DNA of 64,000 nt from Phallusia mammillata. Its lineage: Eukaryota. Below the pieces are notes generated by a model. That model worked only from the letters and a program-made list of their open reading frames with translations, had not been told where the DNA came from and ran no database searches. Below are positions 32,318-53,291 of this stretch, in pieces. A program made the position numbers and the translations under genes. Within the stretch, counting starts at the first letter, position 1. Each line of letters starts with the position of its first letter. The stretch is taken from positions 3,224,001 to 3,288,000 of the forward strand of contig OZ281498.1 in the NCBI GenBank assembly GCA_965637545.1, given 5' to 3'.

Positions 32318-34264
<1,947 letters not shown>

Positions 34265-45830: not shown

Positions 45831-48800
45831 ATGCCAGTCAGAAAGCAGGGTGAGTAGATTACCTATGTGTTTAATAAGTTCTGTTGTTATGATTTAAAAT
45901 GATACATATCAATAGATTTCCTTAAATTTTATTTGGGGAAAAAATGACCACAGCACATTGAAAATGTTAATTATTTTATAACCCTTGAATTTTGTGATTT
46001 TAAGATGCCAAAAGGGCACTGGCTTTATTGGAGCAGTACCACAATCGACTTGACAATCCAGATGATACGCCACTGAAAGGGGCCCTTGAAAAAGTAATGG
46101 ACATTTTTAGAAGCCAATTGTTCCATGCATTGTTGGGTAAGTGTAGTACTGTAGCGTTTTGTTACAAATATAAGCAATAATATGCTTTCGCCAAATTGTA
46201 AAATATTATGATACAGATATGTTGTCATTAGCGGGCAATTTAGACTAAATTGTGTTGTTTATTGTAATTCTAGTAATTACTTTGTTTTCGACAAGACCCA
46301 GTAAACATCCGTAATGGACAGACGTTAGACCCGAGTGTTTGTTTACCCCTTGTTGTAAATTGATACATTGTCTTGATGAATGCATATTGAGCAGCAGTGT
46401 TTTAAACATTTTTGTAGATATTCAAGAATATTATGAACTAACGTTATCGGAATCAACTGAAGATATGAAATACAACCTAATGGTACCACAGGAAAAGCGT
46501 TGGAATGACATCTCTACAACAGGGAACACCTCACAAGTACCAAATCAGTACAACAACAATGCCATATCCACAAAAAAGGTCAGTGCACACTGTAGTTCCT
46601 CATGGTATTGGGGTTGTTTGGTATAATATCTCATTGGTGACAAAAAATAATAAATTTGTCTGGACAACAAAATATTTAATGATACTTGTGTTTTTTCATG
46701 CTGCATAAACTAAAAAGGATACACATTTATTGAGATGTGGACAAGTTGTTTTATTGAGTCGATCATTCATTCTGACTGTTAACACTTTAGTGGTTTTAAT
46801 CTAAACTGCAGAAGACTGCTATTTATACTTGATTCAAATTTATCAAAAAATTGAGTCATTTATCCTTGAACTCAAGATAAATATACTTTGCCTATGCAGC
46901 AGCATCGGTATCTTGCAAGGGTTTGCTTTTTTGCAGACTTTTTTTTCATCTGGAGAAGTTTCCTTTTCTCAAGGGAACATAGTTGGTTTGTAAGACTCTT
47001 CTCACCATGAAATATTAAATTTATTAAATGTGCCTTCTATTCGAGACCCAATGTTAAAACTATCTGTACTTATTTGTTTGAGCTTTCAGAACTAATATCA
47101 GAGTTTTATGTGATAAGGTAGAGGTTGGCTTGTTTGAAAATAAAATGCTAAAAATCATCATACAATATCCAAAACACATTCATAGTGAATTTGAGCATTT
47201 GTTTTCTGCTGTATTTTTTTCAGAAATAATCTAGTAGCAAAACATTGTTTTGTTTGTTTAAGAAAAACAGGAAACTCTTTACGAAATCACACATTATATT
47301 TCCACTTCACCTTTGGTGTTGGGACGTTTGCCAGTTGCCCTTTTGACTACAACTTGTATTAGTTTGGTCTCCACAATTTGCAATAGCTTCCTGTCGCTTC
47401 CCTTGCGCCTCAACCGCTACTGGCACTCCCTTCACATAACAGAGGGTTCCTGAACTCGTAACTGAAGGCAATTGCCACCAATCGCCGGGCGTTTACCTCA
47501 TGGACCCATGCCCCATGCTACTTTGTGCCAAGCCTCGTTGGCTGACTGTCTTATTGCCTTGTGTGATGCGAGCTCGTCTATTATAAATGACGATCGATCC
47601 CCGGGACAGCTCGCCAGCGACGTAATGCACCCATGGGATTCAAGAGAGTCAGTCTAAGGATCAGAATTGGTGCTTGCCGAGTACTCGCCCTGTGTGATTA
47701 AGTCAAGAAGGTGGTTACGTCATTTGCGCGTATTATCTTCAGTGCCACGTGGTTCCAATGCCACAGGAAAAGAGGTTGATTCGCCGGAAAAAGGTTTTGA
47801 GCAAAGTTGTCAGTGGACAATTGTTATTAGAAGTATTGGCAATTGCTTTCGACTTATGCAATTGCATGCGTTGTCAGGCTGTGACAGAAAAGGGCAATGA
47901 ACAGTGGTAATCTCAAAAATCTTAATAAACGCGCTGGCCGCTGAAACAAGAACGGTACCAATTGGTATTTATGTCGGATTTTAACGTTGGGATCAGAAAC
48001 CCACAACAGGCCCGTCACATTTATTGCCCTGGTAGCGTAAATGAGAATCTGATCAGCATTGATCCAAGATTTTTATTGGGATGTCGGCTTTCTCCGTGGT
48101 ACGGTTTTCCTGTCACATTAAGCATTGACAGGCCGTAACCGCCGCTACAAGGTGCAGTTTGTTTGTTCTTGGTGTAAGATCTGCATTCGCAAAATAGGCC
48201 AGACGGACTGTGACATGTGCGACTGGCAAAAATGGAGTTTTGGAAAAATTGGTAAAAGTTATACATTCCATTTGCAGTCGCCGTGTTCGACTTCAACAAA
48301 GAATACGTTAGCCAGATTTACTATTCAAAGTGGTAGGATTTGTTTAGTTTGTGCAATTTGGCGTTTCGCGTGTTGTCTCAATGTGATTGTTTAGGTTTTT
48401 TAGGATGCCGGTAGAGGTTATTTTTTAGCTGACGGTGGTTAGTGGAAAACCGTCGTCTAACACTTACAAAACCCTTCAAAAAATAGTGTGACCAGAAAAT
48501 GTCCTGTATGTGTTTCTCAAAGGTGAGTTCTTCGTTTTATTCTTGTGAAAGGAGTCTTAATCGCGTTCGTGTGTGTCACTTGGCTATGGCTTTGTGTTGT
48601 GAATTGTCGTCACCAGTCTTTCGTCCTGTCTGTTATTCTTGTCATAAAATACCAGAGCATGGTGGCGTGTTTACATAGTTGTTACTTCGCTCGTAAAATT
48701 TCTCGACGTTTTAACACTACCAAGAATTTGGGTTCCTCTGTGAGCCCTCCCTTTGTAGACCAGTGTAGGTATGTGTCATAATGACTGAAGTTAGGCGCGT

Positions 48801-51800
48801 GTATAAAATCAGGTCTATATTTGGCCCAAGGTTGCTACTCATAAATAATGTACTCCGGTTGGTGTGTTTGAAATATTCATATTGGCTTTTTTTTGCGGGT
48901 ACAGTATTGCCTTTAGCTTGTTATCCACTATATCGAACCTTGGCTGTTCATATCAGGTCGCAATCGCAATCTTTATCATGCCAATGGCCAGCGCTTATAG
49001 AATAATTTTGCTGTTTGGCAGTCACGTTTGGGCGTGTTATCGCGCCATCTGCTTCATTGTGTAGTTCTAATAAGACATACTCCCCCTGGAAAGCGAAGAA
49101 GGTCGCACATTTTTGTCAAACGTCAAACCCTATTACATTTGATACTGCATTCATTTCCATGGAACGTGTATTGGGGATAAACACATATGACTCACCTAAT
49201 GCAGCTGAAAATGTTAACACGTGGTCCACTCCGTCAGTTGTGAAGATCGAAGTTGTTGGTTGAATCGATCGCCTGTCTGTACTCTGCAATCTGTTTGTAA
49301 AACTTTTACTCAGTGTTGCATGCGGCCATCAAAGCGGAACGGTGATCGCCCTTTTTTGTGCAAGCTTACCAACTCTGTTTCACACAATTGCCGGTCTCAC
49401 GACCTGAAATATCGTATACAATTAAAATTATTTGCATAAATAATACGAACAATCTAAACTTTTTTTAAATTGCGCAAAGGTTTGTTACGAAATTCACTTC
49501 CTATTCTAATTGACATCATCCGTAAAAATATGACGTATACCAAAAATATGACGTATGCCAAATATTTTGTGATTGGAATATAGCCTATATGAAGATAAAT
49601 TTAATGTGCCTTTATGTCTTTTTTCTGGGGTTATTGTTTTGTATAAAACTTGACGCAGAAAATTATTTGCACGAGATTTTGTGTGACTAAACTTTATATT
49701 CACTTGGTGGACGCGAAAATTTACGAAAAGTGCACGTAAATGTCACGACGTTACCCCAGGTCGATTTATAGGGCAAAGAAACTGAAATCAAATTTCGATC
49801 AGTCTGGACCAAAAAGTCGTTCTTAATTAGATTATTCAACCATACGACGCGGGTGTTGCTCGTATTGTGTTCCATGCCTTGCATCAAGCATTGATCCTTT
49901 TTCCTGTTTTCACCTATCTATTAAATATAGTCTGTGCATTCAGCCAGCCAAACAATATGCAGGATGAATAAGAACAAAGTATGCTGGTAATGTAGCAAGT
50001 CGATATAAGAGAGCGCTAAGCCGTTGGGACGCAACATTCATCGCTAATCCACGTTGCATGCGCTTTTATGACGGTAGTTGTTCTATGCGACAGGGATTCC
50101 CTTCTTGGTGCCGACACCGTTCGTTGTCTCTTTGATAAAAATATTTCCCGAGGGCCACGCCAGTTACTTTTACTTGGTTGGCCAGCAATCGATGCCCGTC
50201 CTCACTGCTTCCCACGATCGATGCTTGGATTGTCGTGGAAGACTTGGCCGTCGAATATTTCGCTCACCAGATCGCGTGCACATGTAGTTTGAGCCAACTT
50301 AAGCAGGAATGCAAGCAGTGTGAAGTATTTTCTAGTCCAAGGTTGTAGGGACGTATTCAAGTTATATTGACTTCTGCTGTATTTAGGTGGATGGATAAAT
50401 GTGTTCCTGCGCGATTTAATTTGTATCTTAATCAGATTATGTACAGCTAGACTAGACCGAAGAAATAAGTTAATTTACAGTTGTATTTAACACTTTTATA
50501 TGCTCTGATAACTCATTCGTACTAGACCCTATTTCTTCTGTTTAATGTGTGCGTGCAAGCAGTCGGTTGCGTGCATTTTTGACTGTGCAAGGGTCCTTTG
50601 ATATTTTAAGCACTAGATTCTTATGGAGCGAACTTAACAGCGCGCGACCTTGTTATGGTTCATGCAGCGTCTTTCCCTCACAGTATGCTTTGTTCTTGTT
50701 CCATGAAATGTAAACGAGCCTCAATCTCGTACACGTTTGGATGCAAGGTAAAGAAAAGTTACCACCATGAGCTGTTAGATTTTACAAAAGTAACAAGAAA
50801 CTTTTGTATAGTTTAATGTAAATTGTGTTAAAAAAAGAGAAGTACAAATACAAATTTTTTTTTGTATTTTGATTGTGTTTTATATGTTTGTTGTGTTAAT
50901 TGGGACATGTATTTGTTGTACAAAATGTTGTGTAAACTCTTTGTTGCTTTCAGCAGTTCTTTTGAACAAGTGACATGCCTAGACTACAGGGCACCCAGGG
51001 TGCTGTCGTGTGTTTAATAATTTAGGCCGGTCGGTTCAATACTAATTTGCAGACTATAGATTATTGCCCGATTAGTGTTAGCATATATTAACTACACCAA
51101 ATTGTACTTTGTTGTAATGTTTGAAATCTATGCGCACAAAAAACTTCAACCTGACGATGAAAAATATAAAAATACCTAAAACTCCTATTGCAGTCAGCCC
51201 TAATTGACTAGGTTGTAGTTCAACTGTGTCTAACTATTACATGTTTTGGGAAATCTTTATTTCCAGGTTAAAATCAGTTATCAGTTGAAATAAAGATTTC
51301 CCAAAATGTGTGATATTACTATGGGAGGTGGAAATCGTTGCAACAATGGCAACAGAACAGGGAATGATTCCCAGAATCAATTTACAAGGATTTGTGTTTA
51401 ACTGTGTTTGCATTCTTTTTGTACAGAAATACCAGTACAATGGTGATGATGTGAATGAAGAAGTTGAACTGCAAAGATCACAGAGTGGAAGTAGTGGCAC
51501 AAAAATACAAGAGAGAACCCAGTTTGCGAAACAACCTCAGCCCCAGTTATCACCAGTTGGATACAACTCAAATGTAAACATTTTTTTAAATTTAGGTTTC
51601 AATTTTAGCTGCACCTACTCATCAGTAGGCCAGTTAATTTCTCATACCACCTCATGTCAATGCATCAACGTGGTATATATCATGCCATTTTTGGTGTTGT
51701 AAACAAAATATGTGATTTATTTCAGACAAATCAGTTACTTCAGCAGTACCAGCAGCCGACCCCTAATGTAAGTACACATGTGAGTGAAGGCAGTACAGTT

Positions 51801-53291
51801 ATACTTGTATTTCTGTTGCCGCGTAAAGGCCTATTGTAAAACCTCTTGTCTGTGTTAAGCAAACACATCCTGTGTATTTTTCAGACCCCACTAACGCCAA
51901 CATACGAATATGATGAGATTACTCTGGAAAGGGTAAGTTTAAAAATATTCTGACTTTTTATACGAACACTGTATTATATAAACAGAATGCTTTTGTTGTT
52001 GGTTTTGTTTTAAAAAAAGTATTTTTGTGCAGGGAACTGCTGGCCTAGGATTTTCAATAGCTGGTGGCAGAGACAATCCCCTAGAAGGTGATGACGTCAG
52101 CATTTACATCACAAAAATTATTGCTGGAGGTGCAGCAGCAGCTGATGGAAGACTCAGGTGGGAATAGTATCTTTTTTGTTGTTTTTTATAACTTGTCGAA
52201 ATGTTAAGAAAAAAAAGAGTTATAAAAACTTTTTTGTTTTTGATAACTTCTTGAAACGTTTAAGGAAAGAGTTATATAAAGATGTATTTTTTAGGGCCAA
52301 CGATGCGATTATGTCGGTGAATGGAGTAGATACCAGCAACGTTTGTCATTCGGATGCGGTGAATGCCTTGAAGCTCGCAGGACCGAACGTGGTGTAAGTG
52401 ATTGAGGGGGTTGTCTGTTGCTGAATGGCTTTGCGCATTGACAATCTCGACATTTCATCCTCAGTCTGAAGATCAGACGACAGATCATGGCTCGTCCGGG
52501 GGATCCCCACTCCGATGTCGCGTATCTCGACAACCTGATTGATATAAAGCTGTACAAGGGAACAAAAGGTGGGTTGCTTCGCTTGCTCATCAATCAATAG
52601 GAATTTTGTTATTAAGGACAATAGGGCGAAATTACCTACACTGGAAGCTTTGGTGCGGGGCTAAAACACTTTCTGCATAAAAATCATCGAACCGGTTGCA
52701 GTAGCCATAGCCCTAAATAACCATCATAGTAGGCGAAAATGTATCTATTATAAGGCTCTTGAATCGACGCGTTGATTTATTTTCCTTTTGTTGCAAACAT
52801 TGGTATTTGAAAGAACTTTGAAACAGTTGAGTGCTAGTAGATGCTTTGTGGTAGTAATGTTTGGGTCTCAAAACATCCGGTCGATTGGATCTCTAAGTTC
52901 AGTCCTTCAATACAAAAGGGTTTTTCCTTTGCGACACGCTGAGCATTTACAAAACCTCAATGTGGCCCTACATTCTCTTTAGTTTTTGAACACGTGTAGT
53001 TGGGAGCGTTGCTGGATTATTGTTTTGTTTCTATACCCAAATCGTGCTTCGTTTGCGTCAAGGAGTTACGGAAAAAGTATACAGGAAAGTTTCCAAACAA
53101 CGTGCGGTTTCCGAAGTATTTTTGCCTTATTGCCAACTACCTAAATTTTCCAAAGCAGACCATAAGGCAGTTGTGGCCAACCTATGGCGCATGCGCCAAA
53201 CGTGGCGCATTGCATGACATGATTGCCTTCTTTTGATAATCATGAAAATCAAATTAATAAACTAATAAATAAATAAAGTAAGCCAGCCCTA

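Follow-up and report, generated by a model that had tools for sequence, protein, structure and literature searches.

A transcribed cysteine-rich first exon in an ascidian-like DLG gene with sequence homology to the vertebrate alpha2-type exon

The window analyzed here (the whole stretch of 64,000 nucleotides of Phallusia mammillata contig OZ281498.1, positions 3,224,001 to 3,288,000 of the forward strand; positions below are counted from its first letter) contains a gene of the DLG (discs-large MAGUK) subfamily. Within this gene, a short cysteine-rich exon (50685-50747, +, 21 codons) was found as the coding part of an alternative first exon, with an N-terminus of the alpha2 type. The host gene is a DLG gene, with the DLG order of L27, three PDZ domains, and SH3 present on one strand; the window stops short of the GK part. 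When Ciona savignyi and zebrafish proteins were used as tblastn queries, an L27 exon (46004-46135, +), PDZ1, PDZ2, and PDZ3 (at 52.0, ~54.26, and ~56.8 kb, +), and the SH3 region (62.3-63.1 kb, +) were located. The PDZ domains were also detected by Pfam.

The Cys-rich exon begins with ATG CTT TGT TCT TGT, encoding MLCSC as residues 1 to 5, and ends with GGA TGC AAG. A phase-0 donor, GTAAAG (50748-50753, +), follows, as read from the sequence and from a joint in RNA contigs. The exon sits between the last L27 (beta-type) exon (46418-46578, +), which was identified by its own RNA joint and by tblastn with the Ciona savignyi protein, and the common exon 2 (51427-51573, +; 49 codons, phase 0 at both ends). 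Exon 2 opens with AAA TAC CAG TAC (KYQY) at 51427, begins KYQYNGDD, and is the counterpart of the vertebrate KYRYQDED exon. The FGCK end of the Cys-rich exon and the STKK end of the last L27 exon are both in phase 0, matching the start of exon 2.

Parts of the stretch were present in 20 public runs; in 16 of these, about one-fifth to one-quarter of its words occur, as would be expected if exons alone were represented. RNA-type contigs from four runs of four studies (X1, X2, X3, and X19) were mapped on 46410-52400. In the contigs of all four runs, the introns 3' of 51427 had been removed with GT..AG ends; thus, the contig data are derived from cDNA. A joint from 50747 to 51427 (GT..AG, phase 0) was found in X1, X2, and X19, whereas the joint of the L27 route, from 46578 to 51427, was found in X1, X3, and X19. 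Only the 50747 route was seen in X2, and only the L27 route in X3. Since RNA-derived contigs of three studies join 50747 to 51427, the Cys-rich exon is transcribed and spliced. It takes the place of the L27 (beta) N-terminus, the two routes being mutually exclusive. Two polymorphisms were observed in exon 2, 51471 G>A (X2 and X19) and 51543 C>T (X19); both lie at third codon positions and are synonymous (Leu and Pro, respectively).

Upstream of the ATG, the transcribed leader is colinear with the genome over at least 50089-50684 (+), as covered by pieces from X1 (50089-50745), X19 (50429-50745), and X2 (50510-50745). Because the contigs are unbroken upstream to 50089, the first exon is at least 659 nt long. 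An earlier note, made from the letters alone, had described a 63-nt exon with an AG acceptor one base before the ATG. Its 21 codons, its phase-0 GTAAAG donor, and the presence of the AG were confirmed, and the spliced product was found in three runs from three studies; the exon length had to be revised, as the AG is unused in the contigs. Across the 4.8-kb intron that separates the last L27 exon from exon 2, depth was zero outside 47369-47533 and 50089-50747. Unspliced pre-mRNA was thus ruled out as the origin of the upstream coverage, and the block 50089-50747 is an exon rather than precursor. Use of the Cys-rich exon as an internal cassette after L27 was also ruled out. Entry at the AG would create a 64-nt exon in which the L27 frame stops after nine codons, so the Cys-rich exon can only be a first coding exon.

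Three further observations were made in the same intron. An isolated contig of 165 nt (47369-47533, +) occurred in X1 only, at low depth and with no joint, and could be a stray exon, a 5' untranslated region (5'UTR) exon, or noise. A 370-nt contig of X3 could be placed only at 51287-51393, where it matches the opposite strand with 3 mismatches and is flanked on either side by sequence that differs; it has the appearance of a dispersed-repeat copy that is expressed elsewhere. At 48499-48522 (+), ATG TCC TGT ATG TGT TTC TCA AAG is followed by GTGAGT. This encodes MSCMCFSK with a phase-0 end and is a candidate micro first exon of the PSD-95alpha type; zero depth and no joint were found for it in the four RNA-type runs.

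The first PDZ1 exon was searched against 1.8 billion protein representatives, and the N-termini of the matches were inspected. The N-terminus of a salmonid DLG4-like protein (P0038) ends with VMCQCKVICSNRTLSLMFGCK directly before KYRYQDEE, and two salmonid dlg1-like proteins (P0060 and P0270) carry MLCHCKV[TA]CTNSTVSLIFGCK directly before KYRIQDED. Region-restricted searches from these salmonid proteins yielded at least 120 DLG4 and at least 120 DLG1/dlg1l matches. Among the matches listed, the alpha2-type exon was found in ray-finned-fish DLG4, over a range from bichir and sturgeon up to teleosts, and in DLG1/dlg1l of mammals (primates, monotremes, horse, porpoise, and shrew), a shark, gar, paddlefish, and teleosts. 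The DLG1/dlg1l consensus is MSPSIKNLDCFSP-MLCHCKVACTNSTISLMFGCK, followed by KYRYQDED. In some predicted vertebrate isoforms, the alpha2-type exon comes after L27 or another upstream coding exon.

The Cys-rich exon was then compared with these peptides. The DLG1 21-mer was the closest match retrieved, with 11 of 21 residues identical and an ungapped BLOSUM62 score of 68, followed by dlg1l (10/21; score, 67) and fish DLG4 (8/21; score, 58). The score of 68 tops those of all 127,876 21-mers in the six frames of the window, among which the runner-up reached 37. In 200 shuffled windows, the maximum scores averaged 30.2 (standard deviation, 4.3), and the highest was 47. A Gumbel fit to these maxima gave a chance of about 1e-5 for a score of 68, a value that is extrapolated. 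In a MAFFT alignment with eight vertebrate sequences, C3, C5, C9, S15, F18, G19, C20, and K21 were invariant. The Cys-rich exon follows the pattern M-x-C-x-C-x3-C-x10-C-K, ending F-G-C-K, and lies directly 5' of a KY(R/Q)Y exon with a phase-0 junction, as in the vertebrate junction FGCK/KYRYQDED. The conserved vertebrate extension upstream, which adds one more Cys (Cys10 of PSD-93), has no counterpart here, as the possible 10-residue extension is Cys-free and shows no significant similarity to it. Because the score is far above chance, the position and phase are those of the vertebrate exon, and the invariant Cys residues align, homology to the vertebrate alpha2-type exon is established at the level of sequence. 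The single gene here is co-orthologous to DLG1, dlg1l, DLG2, and fish DLG4.

As reported previously, exon 1 of PSD-93alpha2 encodes residues 1-21 and exon 2 encodes residues 22-75; the palmitoylated alpha first exons of DLG2 number two or three, and they are spliced to the exon that the L27 isoforms also use. The full N-terminus of rat PSD-93 contains Cys10, Cys16, Cys18, Cys22, and Cys33, all of which are palmitoylated by ZDHHC14 (Sanders et al. 2020). The older PSD-93 cDNA is 13 residues shorter and lacks Cys10 (Sanders et al. 2020), and Cys16/18/22/33 thereby become Cys 3/5/9/20, equal to those of DLG1. The earlier note had compared the exon here with a DLG2 N-terminus and regarded it as an orthologue, conserved since before vertebrates. 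For that DLG2 peptide, the length of 21 residues and Cys 3, 5, and 9 are supported by papers, while its exact letters were not retrieved. A text search of 8.4 million papers with that peptide and its fragments gave nothing relevant, and the same search with the peptide of the Cys-rich exon gave no match. The exon is indeed homologous, with the same position, phase, Cys spacing, and FGCK end, but the relation is not specific to DLG2, as it extends to DLG1, dlg1l, and fish DLG4. The greater age proposed for it was borne out, as a homologous and expressed exon is present outside vertebrates.

Two observations concern the distribution of the exon among vertebrate paralogues. The at least 120 DLG4 matches listed were all from ray-finned fishes (P0038 and P0151-P0269), with no tetrapod DLG4 among them, which suggests that the alpha2-type exon was lost from tetrapod DLG4. 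Another representative, P0057, has an N-terminal WWPECTCTNREWY; its C-x-C-T-N stretch is similar to the C-x3-C-T-N core of alpha2-type exons and may be what is left of such an exon, in diverged form, in another DLG paralogue.

Since homologous exons occur in DLG1, dlg1l, PSD-93/DLG2, and fish DLG4, the exon appears older than both the duplications of these genes in vertebrates and the divergence of tunicates and vertebrates. We therefore consider it probable that the Cys-rich exon is the coding end of an alternative DLG first exon with an internal promoter, an alpha2-type homologue that predates both events. The promoter would lie in the intron that separates the L27 exons from the common KY.Y exon. 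Splicing of the donor at 50747/50748 in phase 0 to 51427 exchanges the L27 (beta) N-terminus for a short Cys-rich peptide. Several observations weigh against parts of this explanation; they concern the start codon, the lipid anchor, and the occurrence of the exon in other invertebrates.

With regard to the start codon, the leader 50089-50684 contains 12 ATGs, of which 10 are short or out of frame, one (50662) is out of frame, and one (50655-50657, +; context gttATGg) is in frame with the Cys-rich exon. The nearest in-frame stop on the 5' side is at 50607, and none lies between 50655 and 50685; the N-terminus encoded by the exon could thus have 21 or 31 residues. Numbering the first two cysteines as 3 and 5, as was done initially, holds from the Met at 50685, which may not be the true N-terminus. 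The ATG at 50655 may extend it, and the vertebrate form is 13 residues longer. The contigs prove presence only and cannot locate transcript starts.

A leader with this many upstream ATGs is ill suited to ribosomal scanning. A pyrimidine tract followed by AG (50670-50683, +; AG at 50682-50683, one base 5' of the ATG) resembles a 3' splice site and is a candidate acceptor for trans-splicing or for a 5'UTR exon. In Ciona, a spliced leader is added to the transcripts of about half of the genes, the mean outron length is 438 bp, and many genes give both trans-spliced and unspliced forms. One function suggested for this trans-splicing is to discard harmful 5' elements. Given the ATG-laden leader, the well-formed acceptor between the candidate starts, and the trans-splicing known from Ciona, we propose the AG at 50682-50683 as an acceptor that exposes the ATG at 50685. 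In some transcripts, this AG would accept a spliced leader or a 5'UTR exon, the upstream ATGs would be stripped, and translation would start at 50685. The AG was not used in the contigs of X1, X2, and X19, all of which run through it; however, assembled contigs lose 16-nt tips, so spliced-leader joins could escape view.

The best-surviving alternative accepts the same exon and the same homology and places translation at the ATG at 50655, giving 31 exon-encoded residues with the Cys cluster internal rather than at positions 3 and 5. This ATG has a purine at -3 and G at +4, its frame is open to 50685, and it is contained in every mapped contig of the Cys-rich route. Vertebrate DLG1, dlg1l, fish DLG4, and full-length PSD-93 also have a conserved extension before M-x-C-x-C, which places the module 13 to 19 residues from the N-terminus, and in a published study, the palmitoylation of PSD-95 was unimpaired by the insertion of 6 residues after Met. 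On the other hand, the 10-residue extension from 50655 does not significantly resemble the vertebrate 13-mer and is without the Cys found there, and by our estimate, about 30% of random frames stay open over 25 codons. With ten more ATGs upstream, neither start is likely to be reached efficiently by simple scanning, and a well-formed acceptor lies between the two. Translation from 50655 is thus regarded as possible but doubtful.

The Cys cluster of the exon would be S-palmitoylated and would tether the scaffold to membranes. By analogy with the vertebrate homologue, S-acylation would anchor a DLG isoform that lacks L27. As with PSD-93, the enzyme would likely be a ZDHHC14-like acyltransferase that docks on PDZ3. 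ZDHHC14 docks on PDZ3 via a C-terminal S/T-x-V ligand, which has been reported in Ciona (Sanders et al. 2020), and PDZ3 was found intact in the window by tblastn. A postsynaptic role of the Cys-rich isoform may be envisaged in the same way. Two features of the exon weigh against this. In a published study, the palmitoylation of PSD-95 required an unbroken run of five hydrophobic residues that takes in Cys3 and Cys5, and the Cys-rich exon reads L-C-S-C-S. Mutation of Cys10 cut the palmitoylation of PSD-93 by 88%, making this residue the strongest determinant for ZDHHC14 (Sanders et al. 2020), and its equivalent is absent from the Cys-rich exon.

Alternatively, the Cys cluster might bind metal, form disulfides, or contact proteins, in which case the exon would alter partner binding rather than anchoring. 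Four Cys residues within 20 residues and the missing hydrophobic run around C3 and C5 would suit such a role. Such a role has been reported for the Cys/His-rich N-terminus of SAP102, which is not known to be palmitoylated. However, the homologous vertebrate alpha2-type peptide is also polar between its Cys residues (L-C-H-C-K) and breaks the five-residue rule, yet it is palmitoylated on every Cys. A cluster without lipid is thus considered unlikely, and membrane tethering by S-acylation is preferred.

In other invertebrates, no orthologue of the Cys-rich exon was found. A related genomic contig (Logan SRR10746996, L001/L002), whose PDZ1 is 85% identical, carries PDZ1-3, exon 4, and an L27 exon; it is much diverged, and no alpha or KY.Y exon was recognizable in it by motif search and tblastn. 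A word search with the stop-free open reading frame at 50610-50813 gave no candidate among proteins of 37 to 119 amino acids, full-length proteins being outside its scope, and an exon-profile scan of metagenomes found nothing. These blanks count weakly because of the length filters and the divergence. That the 21 codons are untranslated leader of a real transcript and resemble the vertebrate peptide by coincidence would agree with the shortness of the exon, the ATG-rich leader, and the missing second invertebrate copy, but it is highly improbable given a score well beyond every shuffled window and a match exactly at the place of the vertebrate exon, in the same phase and at the same length from Met.

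According to Sanders et al. 2020, among PSD-93 orthologues, only those of vertebrates have N-terminal palmitoylation sites. Hayashi reported that the sites are lost in the DLG orthologues of Ciona intestinalis and Saccoglossus, stated that this regulation "appears unique to vertebrates", and called for urochordate data on the origin of "synaptic palmitoylation". The Cys-rich exon contradicts the sequence part of these statements for an ascidian-like genome. The earlier negative for Ciona probably came from the annotated L27 isoform alone. The homologous exon would move the origin to before the tunicate-vertebrate split and the DLG1-4 duplications, where it coincides with the first appearance of the ZDHHC14 PDZ ligand.

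Taken together, a lipid-anchored DLG may have existed in the tunicate-vertebrate ancestor, with the alpha2-type exon rather than that of PSD-95alpha as the ancestral anchor and with the ascidian start exposed by trans-splicing. The chances that this combined reading is right in all its parts appear about even. After the vertebrate duplications, the ancestral anchor would have been kept by DLG1, DLG2, and fish DLG4, alongside the ZDHHC14 PDZ ligand. If true, an ancestral lipid-anchored DLG would overturn the view of DLG N-terminal palmitoylation as a vertebrate invention. In a simple chordate with a single DLG gene, the functions of the lipid-anchored and L27 isoforms should be testable against each other.

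Further exons of the gene include the MPVRKQ start exon at 45831 (+), exon 3 (51726-51767, +) and exon 4 (51885-51932, +), both based on the reading frame and RNA contigs, and the first PDZ1 exon (52033-52157, +), based on the Pfam PDZ match and RNA contigs. Among named relatives, a Ciona savignyi protein matches the PDZ1 exon best (88% identity). In tblastn, the Ciona savignyi protein showed 73% identity across the L27 exon and shared unusual PDZ1 residues with the window, as well as an NNNAI..KKY linker that is absent from vertebrates. Exon 2 and the last L27 exon had no match in Pfam, and a PDB sequence search with the spliced N-terminus returned noise only. The window contains no N runs, has a G+C content of 33 to 42%, and its introns are short. 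From these features and the Ciona savignyi matches, the genome is taken to be that of an ascidian other than C. savignyi. Outside the DLG gene, an intronless and uninterrupted kinesin light chain open reading frame of 635 codons lies at 32318-34225 (-); the exact protein is present in UniRef/nr, and a possible acceptor lies ~46 nt 5' of its ATG.

Compared with known systems, the Cys-rich exon is closest to the exon of DLG1/SAP97 and dlg1l, known from predicted isoforms of mammals, a shark, gar, and teleosts, which likewise adjoins a KY.Y..ED exon, has 21 residues from an internal Met, and carries Cys 3, 5, 9, and 20 and an FGCK end. The vertebrate exon differs by its conserved 13-residue extension with a fifth Cys and by its internal use in some predicted isoforms, whereas here it serves as a first coding exon only. 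In PSD-93/DLG2 alpha2 (PSD93beta in Sanders et al. 2020), residues 1-21 are likewise encoded by a first exon followed by KYRYQDED and used as an alternative to the L27 isoform, and Cys16/18/22/33 correspond to the same four positions in the numbering of the older cDNA. For PSD-93, palmitoylation and targeting to the axon initial segment were shown by experiment; the peptide here lacks Cys10. The ray-finned-fish DLG4 exon, MGPSVMSPPVKNLKCFSPV-MCQCKV[IV]CSNRTLSLMFGCK, contains the same module at the same junction but has one residue fewer between Met and the first Cys and a longer upstream extension. Finally, MDCLCIVTTK of PSD-95alpha/SAP97alpha is also a short alternative first exon with Cys3 and Cys5 that joins the KYRYQDED exon; it differs in having 10 residues rather than 21 and in requiring five consecutive hydrophobic residues, C-L-C-I-V, which are absent here.

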